A stretch of DNA of 64,000 bases. It comes from Azolla caroliniana. Taxonomy: Eukaryota; Plantae; Polypodiophyta. The stretch lies in contig JBHGNT010000015.1 of NCBI GenBank assembly GCA_043228905.1, positions 7,192,001-7,256,000 on the forward strand, written 5' to 3'. The translations under genes were made by a program, and so were the position numbers. Shown in pieces: positions 26,507-64,000 of this stretch (the first letter of the stretch is position 1; each line of letters opens with the position of its first letter). Below the pieces are notes generated by a model that was not told the DNA's origin, did no database searches, and saw only the letters and a list, made by a program, of their open reading frames with translations.

Positions 26507-27247
26507 TGTCGTGCCTTTCGTCTCCGGATCGTTGCGTGAGTCGGGTGGGAACCACAGAGGTCTTGGACTAGGAGAAAGAAGTTCGCGAGATAAAGATTAA
26601 TTATGAGTAAATAGCAAAGAGAAAGATAAGAAACTCGTGAATCACACGAGTATACTATATTAATTGGTACTTAGGGTGTTAAGAGAGAAGTAGATGTATA
26701 AATCGTGAATCCCACGAATAATTTTTGTATTAATTAATACTTAATCCAAATAATCAACAACCCTTTATATATTTCTCTCCTCCTTATATAAGGAAGGAAG
26801 AGCTAAGCATGGCTTCATGCTTCTTTTTTTACAAAAAGTGTTCATGTCCACTAAATGTGCATGTGATGCTTTTTTATTTCCTAAGTATAGGGCTCATGCA
26901 CGCTAGATGTGCATGAGTTATTTTTAGTGTCTCGTGTTTTTTTTTTTTCTTTTTCATATATTAAAAAAATACACGATTTACCTTTTAATAAAGGTATGCA
27001 TAAATAAAGGTCTTATACGTATTAAATCTATATTTAAAACACTTAAGATAAGTTAATGTAATGGTAAGGTTGGGGTTTGTCAACGTGGAGGTGCAGAGTT
27101 TGAATCACGCCCTGCGCAGTAGTGAGTATTTCCTTTTTTTTTTTACATTTATGTCTCTTTATCCGGCTCTTCCTTGCCGGTATGCCGTTTTCTTCCTTGC
27201 CGGTATGCCGTTTTCCTCCTTGCAGGTATGCCGTTTTCCTCCTTACC
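26507..27247 (-). mobile_element. Inverted, 5'-truncated copy of the gypsy LTR at 27652-28463
   Basis: tgtcgtgcctttcg... is the reverse complement of ...cgaaaggcacgaca (ends 28463). The match continues to about 27247. Confidence 0.9.
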
Positions 27248-30200
27248 GGCAAGGAGTGATCGTCTATGATAGTAGCTTGGACCATCAACATACAACGATG
27301 CGGAAATTCGCGAAAAGGTGGTTCGGGCCGTACGAGGTTCGGAAGGTCTTCGACAACGGGACGTACCGATTGTCCGAGTTGGATGGAACAATACTACGAG
27401 TGCCTATAGGCGGGAAGCGGGTGAAGATTTTCAAGAAGCGGACCGACGACAAACCTTATGTGATCCAAGTCCAGGCCGACAACGAGGAGCAATCGGACGA
27501 AGACCACAATGATGCGGGAAGCGAAGAAAGTGGATTACAACTCATAGTCGACATAAGGGGAGAATCGGAGGAAGCTTCGGATGAAGACGGATACGAAGAA
27601 TCAAGAACTTCGGCACATACCGGAGGATGTGCGGGTTTGGAGGGGGGCGAGTGTCGTAGTGTAGGTTGCACACTATGTGGAAATTATATTTTTGTCCCTC
27701 CGGATAGAGAATGGAGTGCTCGGTGAGAACCGGAAGAAAACGGCATACCGGCAAGGAGGAAAACGGCGGCAAGGAGGAAAACGGCATACCGGCAAGGAAG
27801 AAAACGGCATACCGGCAAGGAAGAGCCAGATAAAGAGACATAAATGTAAAAAAAAAAAGGAAATACTCACTACTGCGCAAGGCGTGATTCGAACTTTGCA
27901 CATGCACGTTGACAAACCCCAACCTTACCATTACATTAACTTATCTTAAGTGTTTTAAATATAGATTTAATACGTATAAGACCTTTATTTATGCATACCT
28001 TTATTAAAAGGTAAATCGTGTATTTTTTTAATATATGAAAAAGAAAAAAAAAAACACGAGACACTAGCGTGCATGAGCCCTATACTTAGGAAATAAAAAA
28101 GCATCACATGCACATTTAGTGGACATGAACACTTTTTGTAAAAAAAAAAGCATGAAGCCATGCTTAGCTCTTCCTTCCTTATATAAGGAGGAGAGAAATA
28201 TATAAAGGGTTGTTGATTATTTGGATTAAGTATTAATTAATACAAAAATTACTCGTGGGATTCACGATTTATACATCTACTTCTCTCTTAACACCCTAAG
28301 TACCAATTAATATAGTATACTCGTGTGATTCACGAGTTTCTTATCTTTCTCTTTGCTATTTACTCATAATTAATCTCTATCTCACGAACTTCTTTCTCCT
28401 AGTCCAAGACCTCTGTGGTTCCCACCCGACTCACGCAACGATCCGGAGCCGAAAGGCACGACACAGTTGGTGAACCCGACGTGAAGACAGGTGGCAAGGA
28501 GATGGAGGCTCAACAAGCTAACAATATGATGGCGATGTTCGAACGGATGCTTCAAGAACAACGCACGATGTCGGAGATTTCGGCATCAGTAGAGCGGCTC
28601 GTGCAACGCAACGGGCAATTTAATGGTAAGGATGTGTCGCGATATTTGCAGGACTACAAGGCGGAGATGCTCCGGTGCCGGGCTTCGGAAGGACTGCAAG
28701 TGACATCCTTTAACCGGGTGGCGACCGACGGGCTTCAAGGGAGTATCCACAGGTTGCAACAACAAAATCCGACATGGGAAGCATTCGAAGAGGCGTTAAA
28801 GACCACGTTTGCCATCGAGGACTCCTCCAAGGCAACGCGGAGGGGATTCGAGGATTGGGTGGAAACGTCAGGTAAGGGGCTGAAGGTCCTCGAAGTGTTT
28901 TCGACATTCGAAAGTCGGTTCGGGAGGTTGTCCGTGAGAGATCAAACTATTCTTGCACCGGACAAAGTCATCATGTTTTTGCGAGCTGTGGACGTCCGGG
29001 ACCGGAAAGATCTCGGAGTGCTTCTTGAGGACACGACCACCGAAAGCGGCCTCACCGAAACATGGGAAAGCGTGCGGGATATCGTCGCGCGGTACACGAA
29101 GAGGGGGCAATGGCTTGCCAACGAAGAAAAGAGGGTTTCGGAACCGATTCCGAAACCGAGAACGGGACTGGAAGACCATCAACCGAGGGCTCGGGAGATT
29201 ACGGCCGAGAAGGGAGTCGACGCGTCTACGGTGGAGCAGCTGCTGAAGGAGATGGAGAATCTAAAGATCGCGATGGTGAAGAAGTCGGATGACCGCCCCA
29301 CAAGCTCCAAATATACGGATCGACGGTGCATATGGTGCGATAGCGCCGAACACGATCGGAGGGATTGCGACGACCATAAGGAGGCGCTACGACGGGATCT
29401 CATCTACTACGAGGGAAACCGGATTCATTCGATGGACTCTCGGAAGCCACTCCGACCGAACTTCCGGAAAGGCGGCATGAAGAAGGTGCTCGAGGAGGAG
29501 TTAGCGGCAAGAAGCAACTGTGCGACAACCGCGGGAATATGTGTCGGGGAGTCAACGGGAGCGAAGGCGTCTTTCTGGCCGGAGGTGCTAGGAAACACCG
29601 AGAAAACCGACTCCAACGATATCCGAAACACCGCGGAAGGCGTCCGGGAAGCTACGGGATGGGAGTGCCCTGTCGACAAGAATAGCATATATGCCCTGTG
29701 TCAATTACATGAGGTGTATGTGGACGAGAAACGACGGCGCACGGAGGATGCGGCCGGACCATCGAAGATACCGGAAAGCTGGAACTCCGGAGGTAAGGGA
29801 AAAGAAAAGGCGACTCCGGCATTCAAGCTCGCCTCGGACATAGAACAACAAACCGACTTGAAAAGAGTGTTCGAGGAAAGAATCTTGGATAGCCGGGTAG
29901 ATTTTTCGCTACGGGAACTACTCGGAATAGCGAAGAAGGAGTTTCACGATCTTCTCGTGGATCTCGTGAAAAGGAAGAGACAAAGTACGGAGGAAAATGC
30001 TCCAAGGGTGATAAGTTACGGAGGAATGAAGAAACAATACCGACAAGTGGAGGATAAGTTACGGTCGGCATCAATAATAAAAGAAGACGAAGAAATCGTG
30101 GGAGTGATCGAGGAAGTGTTCTATGGGAATACACTACAACGGCTTGAAGAGCTTGCGGAAGATAAAAGCCAAGGGAACCGGGTAGTCCCGGTGGAATCGG

Positions 30201-32540: not shown

Positions 32541-32640
32541 NNNNNNNNNNNNNNNNNNNNNNNNNNNNNNNNNNNNNNNNNNNNNNNNNNNNNNNNNNNN
32601 NNNNNNNNNNNNNNNNNNNNNNNNNNNNNNNNNNNNNNNN
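32541..32640. other. Assembly gap (100 N)
   Basis: Run of N. Confidence 1.
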
Positions 32641-45560: not shown

Positions 45561-48462
45561 TTTCGACTCTCACTACCATCTATCAGAGTCAACTACGCTT
45601 GATGCAATTTTTTCTGAATCAACACACTTCTTCCAACATTCGCTTTCTTTGTGGCCCTTTTGGCCATAGTTCAATAGTCCATGGCTTTCCCTTGCCGACT
45701 TCCGATGCCATCCTAAGTCCCCCTACTCGTAGAGGGTCCACTATTGTCGATACTTCCTCTATGCCTCTGATTCTGCTCTTGCCGGCCACCTCCATTTCGT
45801 GTCGACCCACCTCGTTCTCCACAACCATGGGGCCAATCCACCTCCATGTACAACATCTTGTTGTGGGTGTGTGTGCTCCTTGACGCACCTATGTGGTTCT
45901 TCTCTACAAGGAGCATCAACTACAAGTCTAAAAACGAAGGAAGCTTCTCCCTTGTGCAGATAACCGTCTAAATCGGCCCGTACTTCTGAGCTAACCCACC
46001 CAGGTAGATTTGCACCACCTCATCTTCATCCACAGTCACGTTGATGGACCCAATTGCATCACAAATATCTTATAGTCTTCATGGTATAGTCAGTTACCTA
46101 CATTCCTCCTTGTCGGAGGTTGTTGAACTCTTGTCTAAGTTGCAACTTACAGGATGCGGTGTTGGCGACGAAGACCCTCTACAGGTTCCCCCAAGTATTC
46201 TTCGGGGACTTCGCATTCCTGATGTACCCAAGCATGTGGTTATGGACACACAAGGCAAAGCAATACAAGACTTGGCTTGGTGCTTGCTCCCAAGTTGGGA
46301 AATCTCTGTTCCGGTGCCGCATCGTTAGCTCCTTCGACATAGCTCCAGTGTCCGAGCATTGACTAGTGCATCTTGTACGGCCAAGATGTGTAGTTTCTCC
46401 TGTCGAGCTTTTCCGTCGAAAGGGAGCTGCCCATTCCTTTGTCTATGTTCTTATCTGTTCTTGTTTGGAAGACGAAGGCTTATCTCTGTGCCAATTCGCT
46501 TTGTCGGCCGCTACAAAGGATCTTCAATTGTCGCTTTGTCGTCTACAGTGGAAGCTTGTACACAGAGAACACATTCCACTTGTTAACCTGCCGACAGACA
46601 CAATAGGTCGAACGTTCAACTCCGTTCTGTCAAGAAGATTGTGGTGGAGAGATGGTTAGTCGAAACTAATCCACCATATGAGTCTTCTACGCGCAATCCT
46701 AAGGTTGCCACGGATTGTATCTCTTGAGTCGTTTCTCTCTTGGCATCTTCCATTAGCTTTTTCATTCCTCCTCGCCCGAAGTTGAGTTGAAGTGGTTGTC
46801 AAGTCTTTGTCGAGTGAATCTTGCCATCTTGATAGTAGATTTTATTATGATTAAGAGCATCCCTATACTCTTGGAAATCTTTCTTCTGGTGGTCGATACT
46901 ATCACACCACATACACCTTCGCACCATTCCACCTCCTTGCCTTGATGAAGTCGAGCTTTGTCCCGATTCTAGCTTCGTCACTTTGATCGACAAGTCTTTC
47001 ATGCCTTTCACCAATTCGTGTAAGAGTGATTCTTCTACTTTCTTTTCTCCCGACTCATTCCCCGTTTCTTCATCATTTCTGTCGGGCAACTCCATAAACC
47101 ATAACTTTCTTTTGCAGAAATGGGCGCACGTCCTTTTCACCTCCTCCCAGTCTTCGGTAAGTCCACTTGGACTATTCTGATCTTCTAAAAGCATTCCCAA
47201 GTCCTTCCTGTCTTTAATATTAGTAGCTTGTAGAAACAATATGACTTTATCTAGCACTATTATATTTCTATCTCTAACATTTAGTTGCTCAAATCTTTCA
47301 GAAAACTCTTTTAATACTTCCAAAACACTTAAATGTTTATTAGACTCTATCCAATCCATGAAGGCTCGCCTTGTCATCCTTGACATATCGTTGAGGTTGT
47401 ATTCATTTAGCAATGCTCTTTCGAAAGTCACCCATGTCTGATGTTCCCTCTGTAGCTCTTGGATCCTTTCTTGTAGCCCAATCGCAGCGACTCGACTAAA
47501 GCTATTAATTTTTGCAGCTTCGTCGACACCGCATTTAAGCATTTCTTCATTATAAATCTTCAAAAATCTTGTTAAATTTATACCTTCGAAGATTCCTACT
47601 TGTGCGAGAATATCGTCGACGGCTTTGTCGATGCTTGCCATCATCTCTTGTTCCCGCATCACTCGTTCCATCATCGTACACATAAGCCTCATTTGCTCCT
47701 CCATTTCTCCTCGACGCCGCCTTCACGTCGGGTTCACCAAATGTGTTGGGGTAGTTGTGGTTCGTGCGGCGAAGTCGCAGGGACTAAGGTTAAGGGGAGT
47801 TGAAGGAGCTTAACTTTTAATAAGGCTTGTATGGTGATGATAGAATGGTTAAGGATAGTAAGACGAAGAGTTACGAATAATGTGTGTGTGTGTGTGAGAG
47901 AGAGAGAGACAATCATAGATAAAAGATAAAGACAATGTATGATTCAAGAAAGAAGATTGAGACAAAGTATGATTCTAGAAAGAAGATTGAGACAAAGCAT
48001 GATTCAAAGAACAAGAGTATATGATATAAACATGATGTATATTAAAAATATAATATTTTACAATCCTTGATCGCAAGATGAATCTTTTGAATACCGACCC
48101 TTGATTTGAACCCACGACCTCAACTTCGAAACAAAAGGTTCTCCACCCAATGAGCTAGTCTTCTTTACTTGATTGTATTATTTTCTCACCCTCTCTTCAT
48201 CCCTCTTGTTTTCCTTGCCCCTCTTTATATAAGTGTTGCCATGCATATGGTAATGTATGGGAGCATGGCATGCATGCAATGCATGAGTTACATGTAATGC
48301 ATGATTGCCATTTGGCGCACATGCATTGCATGTGATGAATGATGGCTATGTATGAAAATAGATATGGGATAAGTATAATGATGAAAATGCATTCTAAAAT
48401 AACTAACCTAGCTTAGTGGTGTATGCTTGGTGCTTGGTATACAAGGTTGAGGATTCAAGTCC

Positions 48463-48498
48463 AACACGTTCGCGTTCACAAGTGGAAGGATTGCGCAT
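48463..48498 (+). repeat. Left terminal inverted repeat
   Basis: aacacgttcgcgttcacaagtggaaggattgcgcat. Confidence 0.95.
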
Positions 48499-49509
48499 TC
48501 CACTTGTAGAATCTTCTTAAAACGAAGCAAATACACCCTCTCTACAATAATTGGATGCACTAGTATCACATGTTCCTCAACTTGATAAGAATTTGCAAAT
48601 ATAAAAATACATGATAGATCTACGAGTGGAGATCATTAGAAATCATGCAAGTTTAGACATGTTGATAAGTTAATGTATCTAAATAAAGTTCAACTATGGC
48701 TCAATATGGCACTATTGTGCGACAAGGGAAACACTAACTTAAAGACTTATATTAATTAGGTAGGTTTTACAAAATTATGAGGTGTACTTGTATCCATACT
48801 AATAAAATGAGATATAATTTATACTTTGACCCATACGTGCATGTATGTAATTGTCGAAAATGTAGGATAGTGCACATTAGGATAAGTGATTGGAATAACT
48901 AACTTATTAAAGTATTCAATACTTATATTAAAAGTTGATCTAATCTATTCCTCAGTTTGTTCATATGGGATCAAACCATATGTGTATATAATTGTGCACA
49001 ATGTAAGGCAGTGAACTTTAGGATAATGTCGTGGAAATAACAAACCTATTAGGCTTTCATACCTGTATTTAAAATTGATCTACTCTATTGCTTAGGTGAT
49101 TCACACAAGATCAAACTCCGAACGATAACGCAACTGGAACCATTATCAACACACTACACAAACTAAGCAGCAATGGAATAGAAACATAATAGTTTTAACA
49201 ATATAAGACAAAGATCCATAATAACAACATGGACAGTCATGGCAATAATTATAGGGCCATGTTCTGTTAAGGTTAGCTTGGACCAAAATCAGCCTCCATT
49301 TAAGCTAGTTCATGTTTCTCCATAAGTTTGGTAGTCAGCTATGCACGCGGTGAAACCAATATCATAAATCTACTAATGAGGTATATAAAAATAAAATTGA
49401 AACATATAGATGATTATAAAGAATAGAATCCACTAGGTAAAACCCAAAATTTGTATTAATAATGTGAAATCTTAACAAATCGTCAGTGTCATATTCTTTA
49501 TAGAGTCTA

Positions 49510-52500
49510 TTACATAGCAATCAATTCATCTACGTCATTTTCTTCATCATCTTGTGTAGAACTGTCTTCGGCTATACGTGCATTGGTTTCCCCTGTTAGC
49601 CGGGCCAACGAAATATCTTCTATAAGCTCATCATCAAGCTCTATTAGCTCTCCCGGTTCGCCGGCTAACGGAGGAATAGGCTCTCGCGAAGCGGGTTGAA
49701 ACCTTTCTGTATTGGCGAGGTTCTTTGCACCGACCTCCTCATCCTGGTCTGGGCACTCCCACAAAGCCTTAATCCGCATATTAATAAATATAACTTGGTC
49801 CTCGTCCTTCTCCAATGCAACTGTATTCCTAAACAGCTTCAATGCACATGCTGACGTAGTTCCTATGATGTAAGTAACAAGAAGATTTAGTTGTCAAACG
49901 ATAAAAGTGATTGGTTATCTCAAGATCGTTACCCTAGTTCGAGGAATACCTGTGCCAGAAAAGAGATCTAATATCCAGTCTCCTTCGACAGAAAACATCT
50001 CGATCAAGCGCATCATAAGTCGTTGAGGTTTTTGGTATGGGTTGACAAGTCCCCGTTCTGTCGTGGTGACATGTCGCAATTTCCGAGTCACTGCTGGATA
50101 TACCCACAGATTTGAACCTCCCACTTCATTAGAATGCTCTTTGATTCTCTGTTTTTTAATTTCATCGAAGTAGCCAACCGTTATGTATTCAATGGCATTA
50201 ACGAACCGAAAAGTTGGCCCTCTATTTACATTGGTCTTGATCCTATAAAAAATAATTCATCGAGTTAAAAATAGATTCAACAACCTTAAGAATTGCAATA
50301 TAATGAAAGACACCTATAAATAATCCTTACCATGCAAGGTTCTCGATGCCATGGCAACGAGATCTCAAAGCTTGAGCTACCGAGTACCCTTGGTCCATAC
50401 TATGAAAGACAACTATTCGCCACAAGGATGCGGTCGTTAGCTCAGCGAAATCCTTGACCATCTTCTCCAATTGTTTAAACCTAAACGGTTCATCGTCGTA
50501 TGATGACCCAGCCATTCGAAATCCGTAAGGAATATCCGCAATCATTAGCGTATATTCCTTCTTTGGCACCTTCTGGATCAAGTCGATGACATCACCGCAA
50601 ACCACATTGTAGTAAAGATCTCTCGTAATATCTTTCTTGTGGCTAAAATTTTTAAACGAGCCATCTTCCTCCATTTCGTACGCCTTGACTAAGCGACGAT
50701 CCTTTTCTTTTCTGGCTCGCTCGAGATGTGCAAGGAAGGATGTAGGGAAATCGTGTATATCCTTAACTTCTCCTTGTTTCTTGCCTCGACACGGTTTCTA
50801 ATAGAAGCAATAGGACATCAGGTATTATTATACAACCTCTACATATGATGAAAGGGTAATGAAAAAATATCAATACTAACCCAATCCTTGAATGCAATAA
50901 AATACTCTGATAACGCCTTATACGAAGACGTTAGAGGATAATCCTCGGTCACTTGTTCCCAAGTTATACATCCAAGTTGTTTCATCATTACTTCTTGGAT
51001 CTTCATGTACACCTTATGACTGTAAAATTAGAAATCAAGATTAGAACTTTGAATTACACCAGATAGACTACAATTTCAGTATTTGAAAGACTTACTTATT
51101 GAACTCGGTGACCATTTCTTCAAGGCTTAAATCTTTCGCCACAACCCTTGACAAAACGGACACAAGAAGCTGCTCGTCCTTAATACCTTGCATCGCTCTC
51201 CATAGAGACAGCTTCATGTCGTCTGCCGCTTCTTCAATTGTCAAGTCAATTTTCTTGGCGGCTTGTGACTTTAATTCTAGTTGAGGGTCAACCCTACATT
51301 TCTTTTGTCGTTGACCCTTTACCTCCTTATTCTCCCACATTGAGAAGATTTGATCTTGGAGGTCCCATACTTCTCCATCTCTAAACGCCAATTGAAACCA
51401 AGATTCATACTTTCGAAGACCATCGGACCTAACATTATCATCTACCACAATGCCGACTTCATGCAGACATTGACGTTGAAGGCCTGGATGTAACTTCACA
51501 CCAAACTTTTGTTTCACATCTAAATACTCGTGGTGGAAGAACCGGATACGCTCAATAGACGACATTTTCTGCCTATAGTCATTATCATTATTATGGTCCC
51601 ATGCCAACAGCTTAGCCTCTTCGGTTGTGAGCCCAACATATATTTTGCACTCGGCATACTTGAAGAAGAAAGTGGTTGGATGTTCTCTTACAAGTTGTCG
51701 ACGTGCCTCTGCTGAATGCGATCCACCAATGACAAAATAATTATATTGATCATGCTTTCTGATATCAAAATCTTCAATGGTTTCACATTCTTCAGGATCC
51801 ACCATAACAATAAAAGGCACCACTGTGGCATGAGGATTAATTTTCATTTTTTTCTTGAGATTTTGAACATGCATGCGATGAGGCTCTCTAATCTCAAGTG
51901 GTCTTCGACCTGTTTTTTCATCAATAGGGGGCCGATGGATGTGTGTTATAGGCAAATTAAATACTTGCCCTTTCCTGACCAGCTTCCGTTGCATTAACTC
52001 TCTTCTTATTTTATTCTGCTCGGATGACAAAACACCCGAGGCCAGCTCGGCTCCTGGCGTCCCTTTATTATCCTCTTCTTCATTTTCACTTGTCGAATCC
52101 GTATCTGACATTTTCGTTGTCTTCTTCTTGGCTGGTCTTGACTGGACTTTGGATACCTTTTTAGTGGCCTTCAAGTGGGAGGGCTCTTCATCTCGTAGAG
52201 TTACATGGCCTTGTATATAAGGCCTCAAGGTAACAATCAGGTTTTGTGAGTTATCAAGTGCTTTTTTGAACACTTCAGGCCCACAAGATTCCTTTACTAA
52301 AAGATCTTCTGAAAGGAACACTTTGCGTACCCCCTTGGAGCAGTCTATCATTACCAGTATGTTGGCCGAATCTGCATCTTCGTAGTCAAATCGTAGAATT
52401 CGGCCATACATAAATGGAGTTTCTTTTCCTAGCTGCCCCTCACCCTTCTTCTTTGCTGTATACAATACGACTTTTTTCTTTGAGTCGACATATTGCATAC

Positions 52501-52762
52501 ACCATTCCTTGTCCGTTAGATCTCGGTCAGGAAGGTCTTCGCCTCCAGTAGCGGCGACAATTTTCTTTTGGCTTACATCACTATGGGGCTGAGATTTTGT
52601 CTCTTCGTTAAAGAGAAGCTTTTTTCCTCTCTTCATGGTCTCCGGAGTTACCTTGGTCTGGGCTTCGATTGGAGAACCTTGTATGCGAAGCTTAATTTTC
52701 TTCACGGGTCGGTCTGACAGATTCTCAAACGACCTATTTAAGAAAGTATATGCATTTGCCAT
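49510..52762 (-). CDS. ParB/Srx-like domain fused to a beta-class N6-adenine/N4-cytosine DNA methyltransferase, 5 exons, 972 aa
   Basis: Exons 52762-51096, 51019-50881, 50797-50331, 50242-49950, 49862-49510 (2919 nt, GT-AG, frame preserved, no stops). Motifs VCGDVIDLI, IADIPYG (motif IV), AWIKTN, NPYQKPQRLMMRLIEMFSVEGDWILDLFSGTGTTSACALKLFRNTVALE (motifs I/II). ParB-like VPFIVMV...YFVIGGSHSAEARRQL...GLTTEEAKLLAWDHN. Confidence 0.88.
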
Positions 52763-53147
52763 AAGTTAGACAGTTACGTAGATTGAAGTTGTTATTATAA
52801 TGAAGAACAGTTTCTAGGAGCAGTAACATATTCAAAAATCTATTCTAGGCAGGGCTATTCAACCTAGAAAATATATATCGTAATAACTAAAACGGGTTAT
52901 ATATTCTTTTAAATAGTAGGTATGACTTATATAGATTCTAAACCTATATTGATGAGAATTTGCCATAGTGAATGCAATTTGTAGATCATTTTCTACTATT
53001 TTAAGCTAAAGTAGGTCAAAAAACACCTATAATTAGAGCATGTATTTGTTTAGAAGTAAGTAAACTCAACATAAAAAGACTGATTTTGACAGACAATTTG
53101 ATAACATTTCCACCCCGTAAACGATTTTTCTCTCTCAAAGGCTACAC

Positions 53148-53709
53148 TTTAAACACGAACTCGATACGGCGTATCGAGTTCGTGTTTAAAGTATAGGTTT
53201 TAAACACGAACTGGATACGGCGTATCGAGTTCGTGTTTAAAGTATAGGTTTTAAACACGAACTCGATACGCCGTATCGAGTTCGTGTTTAAAACCTATAC
53301 TTTAAACACGAACTCGATACGGCGTATCCAGTTCGTGTTTAAAACCTATACTTTAAACACGAACTCGATTAAACACGAACTCGATACGCCGTATCCAGTT
53401 CGTGTTTAAAACCTATACTTTAAACACGAACTCGATACGGCGTATCGAGTTTGTGTTTAAAAGGTAAGTTTTAAACAGGAACTCGATACGGCGTATCGAG
53501 TTCGTGTTTAAAACCTACACTATGAACACGAACTCGATACGCCGTATCGAGTTCATGTTTAAAACCTATACTTTAAACACGAACTCGATACGGCGTATCG
53601 AGTTCATGTATACAATACAAATATTTACACACGAACTCGATACGCCGTATCGAGTTCGTGTATAAATATTTGTATTGTATACATGAACTCGATACGCCGT
53701 ATCGAGTTC
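53148..53709. repeat. Array of 11 palindromes TTTAAACACGAACTCGATACG-(G/C)-CGTATCGAGTTCGTGTTTAAA, period about 51 bp
   Basis: Units start near 53148, 53199, 53250, 53301, 53369, 53419, 53470, 53521, 53572, 53629 and 53682, plus a half unit at 53352. Spacer gtataggt or its complement acctatac; the last three units have shorter arms. Confidence 0.97.
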
Positions 53710-53832
53710 TTGGGAAACGAAACATATTTACAAAAATGTCCACAGTGTCAGAGGCCTACCTGGACTCCTCGCGCTCGACTCTCTTGGAAGACATGGTTGA
53801 TCGTGTTGTGTGGAGGCGGAGATCGCGCTTTC

Positions 53833-53901
53833 GTGCTTTGTGCCTTGAGTGCTCTGTGTGCTCTGTGTGCTCTGAGTGCTCTGTACGCTCTGTACGCTCT
53901 G
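53833..53901. repeat. 9-bp tandem repeat (gtgctctgt-like)
   Basis: gtgctttgt gccttga gtgctctgt gtgctctgt gtgctctga gtgctctgt acgctctgt acgctctg. Confidence 0.8.
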
Positions 53902-53925
53902 GTGAGTGAAATATGATGAGGTCTT

Positions 53926-53936
53926 CCTATTTATAG
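53926..53936 (-). promoter_or_regulatory. TATA-like box (CTATAAATAGG) facing the ParB-MTase gene
   Basis: Plant TATA consensus on the minus strand. Position only; no expression data. Confidence 0.35.
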
Positions 53937-54608
53937 GGATTGAACCCATGGTTAAAGTAACCATAGTCATCTTAACCAATGTTGGTAACTTTGAGGATAG
54001 TTAGTTTGTAACCATAGTCACATTAACTATAGTAACTTATGATTGTATTAATGATTACAAAGTCAAACTAACATATTGATCAATCTTTTATACTCATAAC
54101 AACCTACAATCACTTCAAAGGTTATTAAGGAGACAATGATAGAGGTTCATGAATGTACCAATGATTGATTACTAAAAGCAAAATTTTTTATGACTCTCAA
54201 TAGTTATGTATTAAAGATGTGGGCATGAATTAACCAATGATTGATAAGTCTAATATTTAAAATGGTGAGCATTAAAGAATCAATGAGTGAGACGTTCTAT
54301 ATCAAAATGGGTGTCATTAATTAGCCAATGATTTTAACATTAATCCAACATATTCAAGGCTTGTTAATGATCAGTTTTATATTTTACTTGATTTAACATC
54401 ATTTAGATCTAGTTTATATAATGATTGATAATTTAAGTTAAATTACTTTATTAAAAATAATTTTTAGATGTATTGTATTTTAATAGAATATTACATAATA
54501 TAGACATTCTATTGATTTGGCTTTTGTTTAGAGAGAAGTTTATGTTTAGGGAGGAGTATATGGTTAGAGAGGAGTATAACTTAGAGAGCCCTATCTAGAC
54601 CTTAAGCC

Positions 54609-57371
54609 ATGAGTGAAGATTCACCGTTCTCGATTGAAGAATATTGTTTGTCATCAGACCCATCGTTTTCTACTGAAGAGTATTGTTTATCAACAGAGTC
54701 ACCATATTCGATTGAAGAATATTGTCTTTCGACCGACTCACCATATTCTATAGAAGAATATTGTCTGAGCTCATCTACATGGAATGCAAATAATGACACA
54801 TGTGAAGAGTTCTCTATTGAAGAATACGATATTAATAAAGATACCGGGAATGAAGGAAGTGCCCAGGAAACATTGAATAACATTGAATTAGACTGTAACA
54901 AGGTTACACCAACCTCTATGCAGGAAGAGAAATCTGGGAGCCCTATGCATATTAGAAGAATCCCACGAAGAATTCGTCTGGCTAGATTTAGCTTGGTGAC
55001 ATCAGATAAACAGATTGGATTTGATGTCAACAAAATATGTTGTGCCCGTGGTTGTATGTCTATGATTGGAAAATCAAAGTTGCGAGAATTAAGGCGATAC
55101 TATTTTTCGATGACCGGTGATGAGCAAGACACTTACCTCGGGTCACATATGCAACTAGTATCTGACAAATGTACGGGGATCAAAGTATCATTCGAGTATT
55201 ATATCTTCCATGCGCAACAGATATGTAGAGTTGCATTCAAAATTGTGTTATGTGTTAGTAACATGCGGCTACATAGAGTACAACAACGTCTACTTAGCGG
55301 GGATCAGATGCTCAATTGTAAAGAGGTTCCAAGTATGAAAGGTGCAATTGGAAGACTAGCTATTGGCTGGATGAAAACTTACTTTCAGTTAAATTGTGAA
55401 GTAATGCCCACTACAGGTAGGATGCATCTTTCTGATAATTATACCCGTCGGGAAGTTTATGATGTCTATCGATCTGAAATGCTGGGCTCACGTAATAAGT
55501 CTATCACCTATAGCCAATTCACAAGATTATGGAGAGCTCGGTTTTCAAATGTTATTATTCCTCGTAAAGTACGTATGGGTTATTGCTCCATTTGTGCAAA
55601 TCTTAAAAGTTTGGCTAAAGGTGCAAAGACATCAATGGAAAAGGATACGAGTAAGAAGTTACTACAAGAGCATCGTGAGGCACAATCCTTAGAACGAAGG
55701 AAGGCGATGCATCATAGAGAGAAGTGTTTGAAGAGGCCTGAACAATACATGTGCTTAATGATAGATGGCATGGACCAGAAGAAGACATGCTTGCCGCATA
55801 TGCGGAGGCTCCCCAAAGATGTCAATGATGAGTGCCTTGTTCAAATGCACTTGGTGGGATGCTTGGCTTATAATAGGTCTGTTCGACCTCACGTCTTCAT
55901 TACTTACCCCAATGTTCACAATGACCCTAACCTAACAGTTACAGTGATTCACCGAGTTTTGATGTCTTGGGGACAACCTTTCCCCCCTGTTCTATACATT
56001 CAATTGGACAATACTGCTAGAGAGAACAAAAATTCAACTGTATTTGGCTATCTAAGTATGTTGGTCAACCTAGAATTGTTTAGGAAAGTGAAAGTCAATT
56101 TCCTTTTGGTTGGCCACACACATGACCATATAGATCAGATGTTTAGCACATTCTCCAGACAGTTGTCTCGGCATGATGCTTTCACTTTACCTAAACTATT
56201 TGATGTCATTTGTGATGCATATACACCACGCCCAAAAGTGTTACACTTGAAGGAGGTATATGACTTTAAGAGATATATATTAGATGGGGGTGGTGGGAAT
56301 GTTAAAGTGCTTGCTCAGTTAAACAATATAAGTTTCAATCACATTTTTTTGATAAAGAAAAATGGAATAAGTGGTTCTACACTTTTGTATGCTAAACAAT
56401 ATTCATCTTCTACAACATGGGAACCTGAAGGTGGTTGCCAGTTATTACTTTGTATGCCGAGTACAATTGTCCATGGAGCTAAGCAAATGCCAATTGAGAA
56501 GAAAGGACAGTTGCAGAGCGACTTGGTATTAGAACAAAAACGGTCATGGCTCCAAGCCTTAGAAGAAAAAAGAAAACATATTGAGGCCGCCAAGAAATAT
56601 GCCGCACAACAAGACACGTCATGGTGGGATGTATTTTATAGTGATCAGAAAGAAATTATAGACAATTGTGTATCTGTTGATAATTGGAATTTGGAAACGC
56701 CATTCACATGGTCGCTGCAACATGATCGCGTAAATAGAAGTCCGGAGCGACTAGTAAATGCGATTAATGACAGCTTGGTCCATCCACAACAAAGAGACAT
56801 TTATGTGGGACCAAGGATGACCAAAGCAGCCGAAGCTAGATGGCAAGGAAATTTGCAAGAGCTCACCGCGGGGATGTTGATTGCAACGCCGGCTGATGAG
56901 AACTCACATGGCCACCAATTTTGGGTTGGTAAAATTCTAGAAGTGCTAATGCATGAAATAGATAACACGATCAAGTCTATAAATGTTCATTGGTACAACA
57001 CTAGAAGTGCAAATGCTTTTACAGGTAAGTATACATTGGAGATGATTGAATGCCAAACAAGAAGGGGAGGTAGGAAGAGGAAGCGAAACATTCGTAACAC
57101 CTCGACCCTTGATATCTCTGATGTGGATATCATCGTGTACGACTTCACACTTACAAAAGCCGGACGATTAAGGAAGTCAACAATAGATATAATAAAAGAA
57201 AAATTACCAGGTCTACAAGGTGGCTCGAGTCAAAGGCAAACGAGATCTGCTACATATAATCTAGAGTCAAACCATTTGGTTTATGACGAAGATAATGCAC
57301 TGATTGGTACATCCGAGGATGATGAGGAGGAATCGTCATTGTATATTAGTTATAGTAGTGATTCTCCGTAA
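54609..57371 (+). CDS. Sola-like (DUF7869-type) DDD transposase, 920 aa
   Basis: Single intact ORF. Cys motifs CCARGC, ICRVAFKIVLCVS, CSICANL...H. Candidate catalytic triad IDGMDQ / QLDNTARENKN / FLLVGHTHDHIDQMFS. NLS-like RRGGRKRKR. Confidence 0.88.
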   Translation: MSEDSPFSIEEYCLSSDPSFSTEEYCLSTESPYSIEEYCLSTDSPYSIEEYCLSSSTWNANNDTCEEFSIEEYDINKDTGNEGSAQETLNNIELDCNKVTPTSMQEEKSGSPMHIRRIPRRIRLARFSLVTSDKQIGFDVNKICCARGCMSMIGKSKLRELRRYYFSMTGDEQDTYLGSHMQLVSDKCTGIKVSFEYYIFHAQQICRVAFKIVLCVSNMRLHRVQQRLLSGDQMLNCKEVPSMKGAIGRLAIGWMKTYFQLNCEVMPTTGRMHLSDNYTRREVYDVYRSEMLGSRNKSITYSQFTRLWRARFSNVIIPRKVRMGYCSICANLKSLAKGAKTSMEKDTSKKLLQEHREAQSLERRKAMHHREKCLKRPEQYMCLMIDGMDQKKTCLPHMRRLPKDVNDECLVQMHLVGCLAYNRSVRPHVFITYPNVHNDPNLTVTVIHRVLMSWGQPFPPVLYIQLDNTARENKNSTVFGYLSMLVNLELFRKVKVNFLLVGHTHDHIDQMFSTFSRQLSRHDAFTLPKLFDVICDAYTPRPKVLHLKEVYDFKRYILDGGGGNVKVLAQLNNISFNHIFLIKKNGISGSTLLYAKQYSSSTTWEPEGGCQLLLCMPSTIVHGAKQMPIEKKGQLQSDLVLEQKRSWLQALEEKRKHIEAAKKYAAQQDTSWWDVFYSDQKEIIDNCVSVDNWNLETPFTWSLQHDRVNRSPERLVNAINDSLVHPQQRDIYVGPRMTKAAEARWQGNLQELTAGMLIATPADENSHGHQFWVGKILEVLMHEIDNTIKSINVHWYNTRSANAFTGKYTLEMIECQTRRGGRKRKRNIRNTSTLDISDVDIIVYDFTLTKAGRLRKSTIDIIKEKLPGLQGGSSQRQTRSATYNLESNHLVYDEDNALIGTSEDDEEESSLYISYSSDSP

Positions 57372-57693
57372 AGGAGTGATCATGAATGTATATTTGGCTA
57401 TTAAGTGTAACTACATTCCGCTTGTAACAAATCGAGTAATATAAAATCATGTGTTTTGAATTCTTATGATTTCCCAAAAATCGTTTCTTATAAAATAACA
57501 TTGGTTGTAAAGTTTGTGATATAAATTGAGAATGTATGTTTTTGAAATTCGTCTTTTTTTAGTTACTTCTAAATCACGAAAATAGTGGATTTTTAACCTT
57601 TTTCATAGTATGTTTGAACTTGTATGATACTGGTATCAATGTGTTTTGTAAAATCATTGAAAAACCCCTAAAATTTCCCTTCTCCTTCCATTT

Positions 57694-57729
57694 ATGCGCG
57701 ATCCTTCCACTTGTGAACGCGAACGTGTT
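57694..57729 (-). repeat. Right terminal inverted repeat
   Basis: atgcgcgatccttccacttgtgaacgcgaacgtgtt. Confidence 0.95.
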
Positions 57730-57847
57730 GTCCCTCAATTTTATACATTGTACATCGTATATAAGGATATGGGTTCAAGTCTCTCAAATATTATTAAATA
57801 CAACATTTAAGCTTATTTTTATATTGTGAAGCACATTCTTCACGACA

Positions 57848-58630
57848 ACGCCCGTTAATATCTGGTTAGGAATAAGTTTGCATTACGGTCTTCGCCTACC
57901 CCACTTGCACCACCCTTTGGTGAAGTGTCCTAGAGGGACACCCTGTGTTAGGGCTAGTCTGGCCCCAAGGAGTAACATAGTTTTTGGCGATCACGATTCC
58001 TGCTCAAGCGCAATGAATAGCGGGGGGCTTGGATGACTAGACAAACAAACTACCCAACAACGGAGCGAGCGAGACGACTCGCCGAAAGATTGCAAAAGCA
58101 TGAAGCGTACCACCAGGCGGCAGAAGAAATCTATGCGGATCGATCCTTTTCAAAGGTGATCCGGCGAGTGGCCGCGGAGTCACTCCGTTTGTAGCAAAAT
58201 TCCCATCCAGACGAAGGAAGCAGTTTAAGTAGTCTAAAGGAAGCGGAATCCATCCTACAGGCATTAGCAGCGGGAGAAGGCGATTCAGAACCATTTTCGA
58301 CGTTCGAATTGGATTCGGACGGCGAGTACAACGCACATTCGAATTACCGCAGCAGTCACGACACCCCGGACGGACTGGAGGATGAGGAATCGGATAATAT
58401 ACCAACACCGGAACCGACGATAACAGAACGGGAAGCTTTAGGAAGGCACGAGGCGGATCAACCTCCGACACCGCTTCCAATAGAAGAGGTGGAGAGACCA
58501 TCGTCAGCACCAGCTCGAGTTCCGACACCGGACGACGATATGCCGTTCCAATATCCCAAGTGCCAGGATGTTCCGAACGCGGAAGCTCATGTATATGCAT
58601 TTCTACAAACATGGGAAGCAAGCCATGTGT
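57848..58630 (+). mobile_element. Probable retrotransposon 5' region / gag remnant
   Basis: FQYPKCQDVPNAEAHVYAFLQTWEA resembles a gag N-terminus. Cut by the copia at 58631. Confidence 0.45.
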
Positions 58631-61600
58631 TGACAGGAACTACACGCTCCCGATTAGCAACGCTCGGCCACAACTAAGCTTAGAATCAAACACAAAAAAT
58701 GGGGAATGAATGCACGACACAATGGAGAGAAGAGAACACAGGATGTTAACGTGGAAAACCCAAACTAGGGAAAAAACCACGGCAACCCACAGACTGCAAA
58801 CTATCATTATGTCAGAATGTACAAATGGTAAAGCACCGAAGCAACGACCTCGAGCTTTCTATCTTCGCCACAGGCGGTGGTTACAATAGAGGCAACGACC
58901 TCTTCCTCTCTCTCACTCTCTCTGTACACAGTTGCGCGCTCTAATCTTGCGCCAACAAGAATGACAACAACCTTACATTAAGTTTGCCCTAAGTCATATT
59001 TATACTAATATGACTTTCTGGCTATTTACAAATATAGCCCCGATGGACTCTCAGAAACATATTTGCGAATATGTCCCTTCATCCGGTGAGCACTCCTCAC
59101 CGGGCCTGCATCATCCGGCGCTTGCCGGGCACATGTCATCCGGTTCTCACCGGTTCTTCCGTTGCCGGGTACTCCACATCCGGTTCTCACCGGGTCTTCA
59201 CCATCCGGCTCTTGCCAGGTACTCGTCATCCGGTTCTCACCGGGTCTTCCGTTGCCGGGTACTCCACATCCGGTTTCGGCCTCAGCCGATAGGCCGAGAC
59301 TTCCCATTCGGAGGGACATGTTTACTAACAAACTCCCCCTTCACTCCGGCATGGGATGTCGTACTAGTCTGATCCGCTTTCGACATGCATTCAGCTTGTC
59401 AGGTATCAGTACTTTGGTCGTGTGGATCTTCGTCAGCGCGAACTCCTGGTCATCTACTCTTTCCCGGATCCAGTGATACCTTCGCTGGTTATGCTTCGTC
59501 CGGGAATGGTAGGCCGCATTCTTAGCAAGGTGGATGACACTTTGACTGTCACAATAGAGCCGATATTCATCTTGCCGGATATCGAGCTCTCCGATGAAGT
59601 CCTTCATCCATAATATTTCCTTGCCGGCTTCCACAACCGTCATGTACTCCGCCTCTGTGGTTGACAACGCAATCATCTTCTGCAGCCTCGATTGCCACGA
59701 AACAGCTCCCCCTGCATACGTCATTACATACCCGGATGTAGACCGGCTGGTATCCACATCAGCCGACATGTTCGAATCGGTAAAACCGTCAACTTGAGGT
59801 TTTCCGGAGCCGAATCGGAGACACATATCTGAAGTGCCCTTCAAGTACTGGAGTATCCATTTGACCGTGTTCTAGTGCTCCTTGCTGGGATTGCTCATAA
59901 ACCGGCTCACCACTCCGACTGCGTATCCTATATCCGGTCGGGTACACACCATTGTGTACGTTAAGCTCCCGACGGCAGAGGCATATGGAACCTTCATCAT
60001 ATCAGCCTTCTCTGCTTTCGTCTTCGGGCTTTGCTTATTGGATAACCTACAGTTTGCCGGAAGTGTCGATCCGACCGGTTTCGCATCTGACATGTTGAAC
60101 CGCTGAAGCACCTTTGTCACGTATTTCTCCTGTGACAACCACAGTTGCTTCGTTGGCCAGTTCTGGATGATATGCATCCCCAACATCTGTCTTGCCGGAT
60201 CCAAGTCTTTCATCGCGAAGGTTTGGTTGAGAGCCTTCTTCAGCATCCGTATTTTGGCTTGGTCCAGTCTGACAATCAACATGTCGTCCACGTACAGAAG
60301 GAGTATCAAGAAGTCGCCTTCTTCGAACTTCTTCACAAACACGCAGTGGTCAGCCTGTGTCTTGTGGTACCCTTTATCGGTCATGAAGGAGTCGAACTTC
60401 CGGTACCATTGTCGGGGAGCCTGCTTTAGTCCGTACAGGCTCTTCTTCAATCGGCATACCAGGTGCTCCTTCCCCTTCTCCATGAATCCTTCCGGTTGCT
60501 GCATGTAGATCTCCTCTTCGAGGTCACCGTGAAGGAATGCCGTCTTCACGTCCAGCTGCTCTACCTCGAGGTCCATGCTTGCTGCTATACTCAGCACTGT
60601 CCGGATGGAGGTCATCTTTACTACCGGGGCAAATATCTCGTCGAAGTCCACGCCCTTCTTCTGCTGGAACCCCTTCACCACGATCCTGGCTTTGTATCTC
60701 GGGGGGTTGCCGGCATCTCCCGGTTTCAACTTGTACACCCACTTGTTTCGGAGTGCCCGCTTTCCTTTCGGCAACTCCACCAATTCGTACGTATGGTTCT
60801 CATGCAGGGAATCCATCTCATCCTACATGGCACTTAACCATTTGCGGATGTGGGTGTCATCCTTCGCCTCTACGAAGCTTTCTGGCTCACCCTCATCGGT
60901 TAGCAGCACATGCTCTACATCCGGAAATCTCCAGGGGGCCCTTCTCTCTTTGAGAGGATATCTCAGTCTTTGGGCTTCGGTAACCGGGCCCTCCATTTAC
61001 TCTTCATCTGAATCCGATTCGGGGTCTTGGCCGGTTCCGGTTTCAGCTTCCTCTACTTCTTCTTCTGCCGGTTCGGTATCCTCACCTTAAACGGCTGGTT
61101 CCTCGAGTGCTTACCGGTCTCTTGCCGGTTGGGTCTGCTCATTGTAGAATTGATCCTTACCGGTCGTCTCGGGGTTCATTATCTTCTTCTCCGACTCCCA
61201 ATCGGCGAGCGTCATGTCCTCCATGAAGATAATATCTCGACTCCGGAATACCTTCTTGTCAACCGGGTCCCACACTCGGTAGCCGAACTCATCGTCGCCG
61301 TAACTGAGGAATATGCATGGCCGGGTCTTTGGATCTAACTTTCCTCTCCGGTCCTTAGCTACATGCACGTATGCGAGACACCCGAACACCTTCAGATGCC
61401 GGGAGGGCACTTCCTTACCGGTCCATACTCTCTGTGGCATGTCTCCGTCCAAGGGTATTGAGGGTGATCTGTTTATCACATATGTCGCCGTCGACAATGC
61501 CTCAGCCCAAAACATCTTGGGTAATTTTGCATGCGCGAGCATACTCCGGACCCTCTCCATTATGGTTCGGTTCATCCTCTCAGCCAGCCCGTTTAGTTCC

Positions 61601-64000
61601 GGCATCTTCGGCACGGTAAATTCGAGCCAGATTCCCTTCGAGTGACAATACTCCTCGAACTGCCCCCGGTATTCACCTCCGTTATCTGCTCGAATCGCCT
61701 TCAGCTTCCGACCGGTTTCTCTTTCCACTCTCGCGTGGAGCCTTTTGAAGACGGATAGCACCTGATCCTTCGTCTTCAACGGTGTGGCCCACAGCTTACG
61801 GATGTGGTCATCTATGAACATCACGAAGTGCTGCGATCCTGCATGTGACTTTGTGTCCACTTGACACACATTAGTATGCACCAACTCCAGTGGTGCATTA
61901 CGTCTCATCGGTGGCCTTGGTCGGAAGGAGGTCCGGTTTTGCTTATCGGCCAGACAATCAGTGCACTTCTCCAAGTGCACGTTCTTCATTGGAATGAGGT
62001 TGTCGTCTGCAAGCCTCTTCATCCCCTTCTCGCTCATGTGACACAGCCTTTTGTGCCACAACTCACCGGCAATGTCGGATGCCATGTTCACTTCCTCCGG
62101 ACATAACCGAGCATTCATCAGGTACAACGTGTTTACCTTCTGGGCCCGAGCCACAATCAGGCTCCCTTTGCTGAACTTCATAACACCGTTCCGGATGCTA
62201 CCTATGTAGCCTTCATCATCTAGCCGACCGGCTGATATTAGGTTCAGACGAACCTCCAGAATGTGTCGGACATCCTTCAGCAACATCTTGCATCCGGTTG
62301 GTGTTGCCAGCCACACGTTTCCTATGCCGAAAATTCGGCATGTACCTTCATTCCCCATCCAGACACAACCGTGATCACCGACTGAGTAGGATGAGAAGCA
62401 TTTCCGGTCCGGGGTAAGGTGGAACGACGCTCCAGAGTCGACAACCCAGGTCATCTCGTCGCCGACAAGGTTTATCTCACTCTCCTCGGTGATGAGCATC
62501 AACTCTTCTTCACTTGACGCGATTGCCGTCGTTCCCTTCCGGTTCGGTTTCCTTGTCCTTTCGGAAATGCCGACAGTTCTTTTGGAAGTGTCCCGGTTTG
62601 CCGCAATAGAAGCAAGTAGGCCTCCCCCTTGAATTTGATCGTGTCCTCGACTTTTCCCGGTTTTGGGGACTACGGTTTCTTTATCTTCCAGGTTCCGATT
62701 TGGTAAGGAGTGTTTTGGAGTCGGAGCTCGTATCCTTATCTTTCCGACACGCCTCCTCATCTAGCAAGCTCGACTTCACTATGGCTAGGGATAACTGTTT
62801 CCCTTCCGGCCCGGCGTTGCCCAAGGTGACAACCAACGTCTCCCAGCTATCTGGGAGGGAACCGAGCAAGAGCAGCGCTAGTACCTCATCGGCGAGAGGT
62901 ACTTCCAATGATGTTGCCTGGTGAATCAGCCCCTGGAAGGCATTCATGTGCTCCGCCATGCTGGAGCCATCTTGGTACCGGAGTCTTACTAGCTTCCGGA
63001 ATACCGAAACCTGATTAACAACATTTTTGTTTTGAAACATAATGACGATCTTCTCCCAGAGCTCATGAGCCTTGCTCTCTTCATTGAAGTTGTTGTATAG
63101 GCTCATGTCGATGAAGCACCGTATGTACGCCGTTGTCTTCATGTGCATCACCTCCCATATCGCGACGTCGATCTTGTCCAGTCTCTTGTCCCCGAACTAA
63201 ACAGGCAACCAAAGATCTTTAACCACGAGCATGTCCCTCATCTTCGACTTCCACACCGAATAGTTGGAGCCGGTGAGCTTGAACATACCTCCCAATGAAT
63301 CATCCATTTTTTTGTGTCGTTTCGCTCTGATACCACTTGACAGGAACTACACGCTCCCGATTAGCAACGCTTGGCCATAACCGAGCTTAGAATCAAACAC
63401 AAAAAACGGGGAATGAATGCTCGACACAATGGAGAGAAGAGAACACAGGATGTTAACGTGGAAAACCCAAACTAGGGAAAAAACCACGGCAACCTACAGA
63501 CTGCAAACTATCACTATGTTAGAATGTACAAATGGTAAAGCACCGAAGAAACGACCTCGAGCTTTCTATCTTCGCCACAGGCGGCGGTTACAACAGAGGC
63601 AACGCCCTCCTCCTCTCTCTCACTCTCTCTGTACACAGTTGCGCGCTCTAATCTTGCACCAACAAGAATGACAACAACCTTACATTAAGTTTGCCCTAAG
63701 TCATATTTATACTAATATGACTTTCCGACTATTTACAAATATAGCCCCGATGGACTCTCAGAAACATATTTGCGAATATGTCCCTTCATCCGGTGAGCAC
63801 TCCTCACCGGGCCTGCATCATCCGGTGCTTGCCGTGCACATGTCATCCGGTTCTCACCGGGTCTTCCGTTGCCGGGTATTCCACATCCGGTTCTCACCGG
63901 GTCTTCACCATCTGGCTCTTGCCGGGTACTCATCATCCGGTTCTCACCAGGTCTTCCGTTGTCGGGTACTCCACATCCGGTTTCGGCCTCGGCTGATAGG
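58631..64000 (-). mobile_element. Ty1/copia (Tnt1/Tork-like) LTR retrotransposon, disrupted; 5' LTR runs off the window
   Basis: 3' LTR 58631-59330, PPT 59331-59341, PBS complement gctctgatacca 63324-63335, 5' LTR from 63338. Gag-pol fragments 62681-63151, 61111-62760, 59872-60816, 59341-59844. Confidence 0.95.

Follow-up and report, generated by a model that had tools for sequence, protein, structure and literature searches.

A Sola1-Type Transposon of the Fern Azolla caroliniana with a Predicted ParB-Like/Amino-Methylase Gene and a Phased Palindrome Array

We analyzed a 64,000-nt stretch of the genome of the fern Azolla caroliniana (contig JBHGNT010000015.1, positions 7,192,001 to 7,256,000 of the forward strand; hereafter the window, to whose coordinates all positions below refer unless a locus is named) and found that a transposon of 9,267 bp (48463 to 57729) combines three parts, i.e., a transposase of the Sola1 type, a divergently oriented accessory gene for a 972-aa protein that joins a predicted ParB-like region to a DNA amino-methylase, and an array of 11 palindromes between the two genes. 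The three parts recur together in diverged loci, the two genes diverge in the same order, and the accessory gene is under strong purifying selection, so that the three-part system proposed in an earlier reading of the letters alone (hereafter the sequence-only reading) holds as a conserved and selected unit. We consider it somewhat probable that elements of this lineage carry, as a standing component, a module that directs DNA marking to the element itself. The design itself is known from algae, where it was described in 2025, and is here extended to land plants.

Results and Discussion

The element is bounded by 36-bp terminal inverted repeats (TIRs), the left one starting with AACAC at 48463 to 48498 on the plus strand and the right one lying at 57694 to 57729 on the minus strand. 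Their sequence is AACACGTTCGCGTTCACAAGTGGAAGGAT[T/C]GCGCAT, and the two ends match as inverted copies at 35 of 36 positions. A 4-bp target site duplication (TSD), GTCC, flanks the element on both sides (48459 to 48462 and 57730 to 57733), so that both the TIRs and the TSD of the sequence-only reading stand. The same reading had placed the insertion within a gypsy long terminal repeat (LTR), for which no confirmation was obtained: neither flank is repeated elsewhere in the window, and Pfam gave no match for the open reading frames (ORFs) in them. To the right of the transposon, the neighboring element is a copia element.

The transposase is encoded by an uninterrupted plus-strand ORF of 920 aa without a stop (54609 to 57371), which matches Pfam DUF7869 with an E value of 1.8e-51; a protein atlas search with it returned nothing beyond DUF7869. 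Its relatives occur in Ceratopteris, the liverwort Riccia, Chara, oysters, mussels, sea urchin, and amphioxus. Its acidic residues D386/D389, D467, and D509 lie within blocks conserved across plant and animal DUF7869 proteins (IDGMDQ, LDNTARENKN, and GHTHDHIDQ), and with these residues in a stop-free frame the transposase can be called an intact DDD enzyme, as had been claimed. The protein has a Cys-rich N-terminal region and a beta-rich C-terminal region.

For class assignment, we compared the transposase by eye with that of the curated Sola1-1_Ec32 of the brown alga Ectocarpus, whose corresponding blocks are MMDGANQ, VDNTVAENKN, and VGHTHIQIDQ (Dinatale et al. 2025, supplement, PMC12477816). 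The two transposases have MDGxxQ...P, (V/L)DNTxxENKN, and VGHTHxxIDQxFS in common. Sola1-1_Ec32 also has a 4-bp TSD and termini beginning with AAC, and its best blastp hit is the Repbase entry Sola1-1_PPa (PMC12477816). Because the transposase blocks, the 4-bp TSD, and the AAC termini are shared with the curated Ectocarpus element, we accept the Sola1-type label, which makes the earlier "Sola-like" call more specific. The hallmarks of Sola1 (a 4-bp TSD with TIRs and a DDD transposase bearing the Sola1 signature, the blocks being matched by eye) are thus present, and the element is a young and apparently autonomous cut-and-paste transposon of this type.

The accessory gene lies on the minus strand, divergent from the transposase. 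A minus-strand ORF of 556 aa is followed by shorter ORFs that are linked to it through canonical introns; the resulting five exons amount to 2919 nt (972 codons and a stop), and all introns are GT-AG, as expected for the intact divergent gene of 972 aa that had been proposed. Exon 1 (52762 to 51096; 555 codons plus 2 nt) encodes a disordered N terminus, a PH-like domain, a linker, and a ParB/sulfiredoxin (Srx)-like domain with a helical region, and exon 2 (51019 to 50881) adds 46 codons. Exon 3 (50797 to 50331) encodes a linker and the N-terminal part of the methylase with catalytic motif IV, which has the form DIPYG where relatives have DPPYG or DFPYG; exon 4 (50242 to 49950) encodes the methylase stretch with NPYQKP and FSGTG, the S-adenosylmethionine (AdoMet)-binding motif I; and exon 5 (49862 to 49510) completes motif I (FSGTG/TT, the slash marking the exon junction) and encodes the C-terminal part of the methylase, an acidic tail, and the stop, in alignment with the Ginkgo homologue P0029 and with CcrM/MboIIA. 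The annotated Ceratopteris richardii protein P0019 crosses the junctions of exons 1 and 2 and of exons 2 and 3 identically. In the searches described below, exons were used singly, and the full-length natural homologues P0029 and P0239 stood in for the whole protein.

Exon 1 had no match in Pfam even at an E value of 10, a 25-sequence profile retrieved only low-complexity noise from the PDB sequences, and across all members of the accessory family Pfam gave at best a weak match to DUF6551. The fold was settled by structure search alone. We built an AlphaFold model of exon 1 on 25 homologues, in which the ParB region had a predicted local distance difference test score (pLDDT) of about 70 to 90, and the best Foldseek matches in the PDB were Noc, ParB (bound to CDP or CTP-gamma-S), KorB, PadC, and sulfiredoxin, with E values of 1.7e-5 to 1e-2 and a probability of 1.0; the template modeling (TM) scores were low (0.15 to 0.26 by query) because the model is multidomain. 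By this modeled structure, the earlier ParB-like call is right: exon 1 is predicted to hold a ParB/Noc/sulfiredoxin fold followed by a helical DNA-binding region (aa ~270 to 556; 51095 to 51955, minus strand).

The model also predicts a PH-like beta domain closer to the N terminus (aa 74 to 192; 52187 to 52543, minus strand; pLDDT 89.6), which a basic/acidic linker separates from the ParB/Srx-like domain. Foldseek found no match for this beta domain. In a VIA-align comparison it resembled PH/PTB domains, most closely the SANTA domain of M18BP1 (Z 5.9; root mean square deviation, 3.6; 96 residues), a match that at this Z score is inconclusive and suggests no more than a common fold.

The methylase part was recognized from exon 4 alone, which matches Pfam PF01555 with an E value of 1.2e-8 and 35.7 bits, above the cutoff of 26.7; the homologues P0239, P0109, and P0029 likewise score above this cutoff. 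Motif IV stands in the context LMIADIPYGF in exon 3 and precedes motif I, which spans exons 4 and 5 (NPYQKP...FSGTG/TT). This is the beta-class order, and together with the PF01555 match it bears out the beta-class amino-methylase predicted from the letters. The Asp, Pro, and Tyr of motif IV and the whole of motif I are retained; the fern form of motif IV is DIPY, and relatives have DPPY (metagenome contigs) or DFPY (Chara). Among solved relatives, the Ginkgo homologue P0029 was best aligned to the adenine methylases CcrM, MboIIA, and RsrI, and weak hits to CcrM-like adenine methylases in NCBIfam and to phage DNA methylases in PHROGs lay far below equivalog cutoffs. Since motif IV carries an aspartate, the usual motif rule favors adenine-N6 over cytosine-N4, and we infer that the accessory methylase is of the adenine-N6 type.

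The 11 palindromes expected between the two genes were also found. The array (53146 to 53709) has a 51-bp period, the core TCGATACG-S-CGTATCGA, and units of up to 43 bp; 11 matches to CTCGATACGSCGTATCGAG with at most three mismatches lie at 53160 to 53706, where 0.01 would be expected by chance, and the spacing is 51 bp save for one step of 67 bp and two of 52 bp. Each unit is a palindrome with an odd center (G or C), accompanied by an 8-bp spacer that is seen in both orientations. The array lies about 385 bp upstream of the accessory start codon and forms a CpG island (observed/expected, 2.78, versus 0.88 for the whole element), and the palindrome half-site occurs nowhere else in the element, the ends and TIRs included. 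Separately, the units at 53211, 53313, and 53380 are imperfect, and all deviate at the same core CpG position (TCGA to TGGA or TCCA), a C/G transversion unlike the C-to-T decay expected from deamination of 5-methylcytosine (5mC).

Arrays with the same 51-bp period stand in the same place at three further loci (L001, L002, and L003). All units of the three fern families carry the 17-bp core TCGATAC-NNN-GTATCGA without variation, and the outer arms vary by family and stay self-complementary, namely, CACGAAC/GTTCGTG in the window, CAGCCCAAC/GTTGGGCTG in L002, and CCAGAAT/ATTCTGG in L001. Outside the arrays, the intergenic spacers of 1.1 to 1.8 kb barely align. The liverwort Riccia has about six units of the form GGCAACTCATGCG-N-CGCATGAGTTGCC, whose outer CAACTC/GAGTTG is shared with L002, and Ceratopteris has TCGATGCC-T-GGCATCGA with a 31-bp period inside intron 2. 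Judged by its sequence pattern, the array looks like a coevolving binding site for a dimer, i.e., a candidate site.

The same divergent gene pair recurs in two other fern families and beyond: it is present at L001, at L002/L003, at a Riccia sorocarpa locus (L005; CM100800.1, genes R1sor_022315 and R1sor_022317), and on a metagenome contig (L006; ERZ24794615 k141_991271). The 36-bp TIR recurs in L001 to L003 with one to six mismatches. L006 encodes an intronless ParB-methylase of 981 aa with canonical DPPY beside a DUF7869 transposase, and its TIRs of 229 bp likewise start with AACAC. Homologues of the accessory protein are also found in Ginkgo, Adiantum, and Chara. There are 34 clusters of homologues, many of which have intact ORFs of at least 500 aa; a profile of distant full-length relatives recovered only the query's own cluster. 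From a DNA run of what is likely the source organism, 2352 contig pieces fell on the accessory gene at an identity of at least 90%, which indicates that the family is multicopy. At Riccia, Ceratopteris, and an old copy in the window, too, related palindromes adjoin the accessory gene.

The ParB part of L001 is 67% identical to that of the window copy, and that of L002/L003 is 73% identical. When the transposase core, the ParB core, and the methylase exons were compared with the window copy, identities were 80%, 87%, and 88 to 97% in L002; 78%, 82%, and 74 to 81% in L001; 46%, 32%, and 32 to 43% in Riccia L005; and 34%, 25%, and 26% in L006. Identity therefore ranks the loci alike for all three regions, and this congruent order of the two genes fits long joint inheritance. 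In comparison with L009, the ratio of nonsynonymous to synonymous substitution rates (dN/dS) was 0.07, 0.03, and 0.05 for exons 1, 2, and 3, respectively. Against L001 and L002, dS was saturated and dN was 0.02 to 0.25, and for a 95%-identical copy dN/dS was 0.35, a value in keeping with the decay of copies once they have inserted. The sequence-only reading had considered a one-off capture of the gene and neutral evolution of the methylase; neither agrees with the recurrence of the pair in diverged loci and the dN/dS values of 0.03 to 0.07.

Several observations at these loci concern details of single copies. The model R1sor_022317 reads through the palindrome array (L005, 10374 to 10604; aa 94 to 170), a translation that is probably an annotation artifact, and methylase exons lie downstream in L005, though the R1sor_022317 product has no recorded Pfam hit. 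In L006, the spacer holds different inverted repeats (4039 to 4287), and telomere-like TAACCC repeats are subterminal.

From the anatomy, fold, motifs, linkage, selection, and motif conservation described above, we infer a mode of binding, catalysis, target base, and biological effect as follows. The ParB-like/helical region of the 972-aa protein would dock, probably as a dimer, on the CpG-rich palindromes phased at 51 bp and thereby carry the tethered methylase to the control region of its own element. There, a methylase of the aspartate type (DIPY), closest to CcrM/RsrI/MboIIA, would most likely write N6-methyladenine (6mA), and the mark might determine the chromatin and expression state of both divergent genes, or whether they are silenced. 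The likeliest purpose would be to oppose host silencing by 5mC or to limit the element's own transposase expression. Loading of the ParB-like part at the array and marking of the element by the methylase, as the sequence-only reading had it, is a reasonable proposal that fits the conserved core motif, and the same reading has been put forward in the literature for algal elements.

A number of points weigh against this marking module. Sequence profiles fail to find ParB, with neither a Pfam nor a PDB hit and only the weak DUF6551 match. The arginine patch GERRxRA, which serves CTP binding and clamping in canonical ParB, is replaced by GGSHS within a near-invariant VIGGSHS; in the equivalent stretch, VIGGSHSAEARRQL, G346, H349, and S350 are invariant and G347 is nearly so in 25 relatives, and the stretch is nearer to the GG(C)H(R) of Srx and ParB-like nucleases. 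The replacement makes ParB-style CTP clamping and spreading by the accessory protein appear unlikely. Motif IV departs from the canonical DPPY in that its first proline is replaced; the Erm and KsgA adenine methylases function with NIPY/NLPY. The layout is not fixed either, because at the Ceratopteris richardii locus L004 (MU262555.1, 11795 to 12029) the array lies in intron 2 and no transposase was found within 10 kb; the methylase exons there have frame breaks. Lastly, the accessory gene was found in no RNA run; the one matching run is of undeclared type, and since its contigs are colinear across introns, it is DNA.

Other explanations of the same anatomy have to be weighed. The ParB-like protein and the array might constitute a sequence-specific switch of a bidirectional promoter, with the methylase inactive or acting solely as an additional module for DNA binding. 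Two ParB relatives known to regulate or tether DNA, KorB and Noc, are among the best structural matches, and this, together with an array exactly between the divergent genes, a half-site absent from the ends, and the departure of motif IV from DPPY, speaks for such a switch. However, the methylase exons are the best-conserved part of the gene (in L002, exon 4 is 97% identical versus 87% for the ParB core; exon 3 has a dN/dS of 0.05), motif I is complete, and motif IV retains its D, P, and Y, so that the switch stays unlikely, if with an appreciable chance. It is rather improbable that the module acts in transposition itself, in its mechanics or timing, with ParB-like bridging that condenses the element or pairs its parts and methylation that marks the donor DNA and couples transposition to replication. 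In bacteria, Dam methylation controls IS10 and Tn5, DNA bridging is established for bacterial ParB, and the module has been inherited with the transposase over long times; on the other hand, the palindrome core is absent in and near the TIRs, the clamping arginine patch is missing, and the element has no ParA-like partner ORF.

The array might also be a binding site of the transposase or of some host factor, its closeness to the ParB gene then reflecting a shared promoter architecture. The Cys-rich N-terminal and beta-rich C-terminal regions of the transposase could be taken in this sense, but related palindromes accompany the ParB gene where no transposase is near (Ceratopteris L004 and an old gene copy at 6397 to 7566 of the window), and ParB-domain genes of red algae that travel with a different transposase superfamily also adjoin inverted-repeat arrays, so that we rate this explanation as quite improbable. 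Capture of host gene fragments is common in plant DNA transposons, and the methylase gene could on such grounds be taken for a one-off neutral passenger and the array for an ordinary satellite. This is scarcely credible and was rejected: no fewer than four further diverged loci, one of them in a liverwort, have the pair, dN/dS is 0.03 to 0.07, the core motif does not vary within spacers that are unalignable in other respects, and many of the 34 homologue clusters have intact ORFs.

The marking module that we favor has close counterparts in algae. Sola1-1_Ec32 of Ectocarpus (21.5 kb) carries, opposite the transposase strand, a gene for a protein of 1104 aa with ParB-like and N4C/N6A methylase domains (Dinatale et al. 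2025, Genome Biol, PMC12477816). It resembles the window element in being a Sola1 with a divergent ParB-plus-methylase gene, in its 4-bp TSD, in its AAC termini (AACCG versus AACAC), and in its transposase blocks, and differs from it in length (21.5 kb versus 9.3 kb) and in its TIRs (282 bp versus 36 bp). The accessory proteins, which we liken to each other by the published description, have 1104 aa there and 972 aa, split by four introns, here, and a palindrome array is not mentioned for Sola1-1_Ec32 in PMC12477816.

In the giant Plavaka transposons of the red alga Bostrychia, PAG3 has an N-terminal ParB-like domain joined to a 2-oxoglutarate (2OG)-dependent oxygenase, adjoins tandem inverted-repeat arrays, and has been proposed to bind and modify its own transposon (Petroll et al. 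2025, bioRxiv 10.1101/2025.02.11.637652/Curr Biol). As in the window protein, a ParB-like domain is fused to a nucleic-acid-modifying enzyme and an inverted-repeat array lies beside the gene, whereas the fused enzyme is an oxygenase, not a methylase (the methylase is in a separate PAG2 with a SET domain), and the transposase superfamily is Plavaka/CMC rather than Sola1. The features of the algal ParB-modifier genes, i.e., a fusion inside the element, divergence from the transposase, and an adjoining inverted-repeat array, are all found in the window element.

Earlier, ParB-helix-turn-helix (HTH) proteins with Dam-type methylases were described in chlorophytes and chytrids, as were methylases of phage ParB-terminase loci (Iyer, Zhang and Aravind 2016, PMC4738411). 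Common to that clade and the window protein is a ParB fused to or linked with an amino-methylase of phage origin acquired by eukaryotes, and the window methylase matches phage PHROGs; that clade is, however, Dam/DpnM-like (group 2), whereas the window methylase belongs to PF01555 and is of the CcrM/RsrI-like beta class. The bacterial systems ParB-parS, Noc-NBS, and KorB-OB have the same fold, as judged from the structure search, and their palindromic sites, often several and at least 16 bp long, have a counterpart in the candidate sites of the array. The window protein differs from them in that it lacks the arginine patch (GGSHS), is fused to a methylase, and has a further, PH-like domain at its N terminus. 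ParA is absent, too: apart from the two genes, the element contains no long ORF, and no match to an ATPase was obtained that could represent a ParA-type partner.

VANC of the Arabidopsis VANDAL (Mutator-like) elements, a protein associated with the work of Fu et al. in 2013 and Hosaka et al. in 2017, reportedly counteracts silencing and causes loss of 5mC. VANC, too, is encoded by a transposon and acts on short motifs repeated in the noncoding DNA of its element, the motif and the protein codiversifying, but it has no homology to the window protein and no methylase, so that the analogy is one of logic only.

In the sequence-only reading no description of the combination was known, but one exists: Sola1 with a ParB-methylase has been published for Ectocarpus (PMC12477816). 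To a large extent the architecture is thus already catalogued, as Sola1/ParB-methylase in Ectocarpus and as ParB genes with arrays in Plavaka. In fern genome papers, Sola elements figure in repeat tables only, and we found no description of a ParB-methylase Sola1 module in land plants in a literature search that left subscription journals mostly outside. What looks new is the occurrence in land plants, the conserved core motif with fixed phasing, the evidence of selection, and the congruent divergence of both genes.

We tentatively suggest, as a possibility somewhat short of probable, that the elements form an ancient streptophyte lineage (Chara, liverworts, ferns, and Ginkgo) in which the protein and its cis sites coevolve and the protein writes 6mA or N4-methylcytosine (4mC) on thousands of copies. 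If this is true, land plants would have their first defined system of amino-methylation that is both sequence-targeted and encoded by a transposon, and methylation signals other than 5mC in fern DNA would have a concrete source. Meaningful 6mA/4mC in land-plant DNA is disputed, and we know of no dedicated writer with a defined target there; the element supplies a candidate writer together with a candidate target, the 17-bp core, which the families have in common and which recurs with a 51-bp phase. The element also shows the association of Sola1 with a ParB-methylase to be old and selected rather than a peculiarity of algae. Because the family is multicopy and has relatives in the transformable model fern Ceratopteris, the idea proposed for the algal elements is directly testable.

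Other features of the element and the window

At the left end of the element, a 10-bp stem (ACAAGTGGAA ... TTCCACTTGT; 48481 to 48510) joins the inner part of the TIR to the complementary sequence that follows it; such a stem is also present at the left end of L002 and is absent at right ends. The host DNA outside the TSDs (48440 to 48462 and 57734 to 57752) is partly inverted-complementary, with the inverted repeat reaching 59 nt at 83%, which may be due to chance or to a preference for palindromic targets. An 18-bp repeat stands three times immediately upstream of the transposase start codon (54525 to 54588), and a 39-bp repeat of 3.5 copies (54630 to 54764) reiterates the 13-aa peptide SIEEYCLS.DSP. 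at the transposase N terminus.

Two further pieces of related elements lie in the window. The older, diverged copy of the ParB-like gene (6397 to 7566, plus strand, with 55 to 130 and 6166 to 6225) comprises exon 1 (aa 238 to 554) at 64% identity and exon 2; neither methylase exons nor a transposase was detected for it. Its upstream region is interrupted by an LTR retrotransposon (LTRs at 655 to 1070 and 5724 to 6165) and holds decayed palindromes of a related type, e.g., GAACTCGATGCAGTGCATTGAGT. A solo right end of a sister copy (25913 to 26506; 92% identical) retains the TIR and the last 74 transposase codons and stops at 26506, where an inverted duplication starts (26507 to 27249 versus 27748 to 28463).

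The window as a whole is a nest of LTR retrotransposons, among them three copia elements (8495 to 13724, 19519 to 24900, and 58630 to 64000) whose LTR pairs are nearly identical (95.8 to 100% over the aligned stretches). It also contains gypsy remnants, a satellite of the 85-bp type (18437 to 19518), and an assembly gap of 100 N (32541 to 32640).

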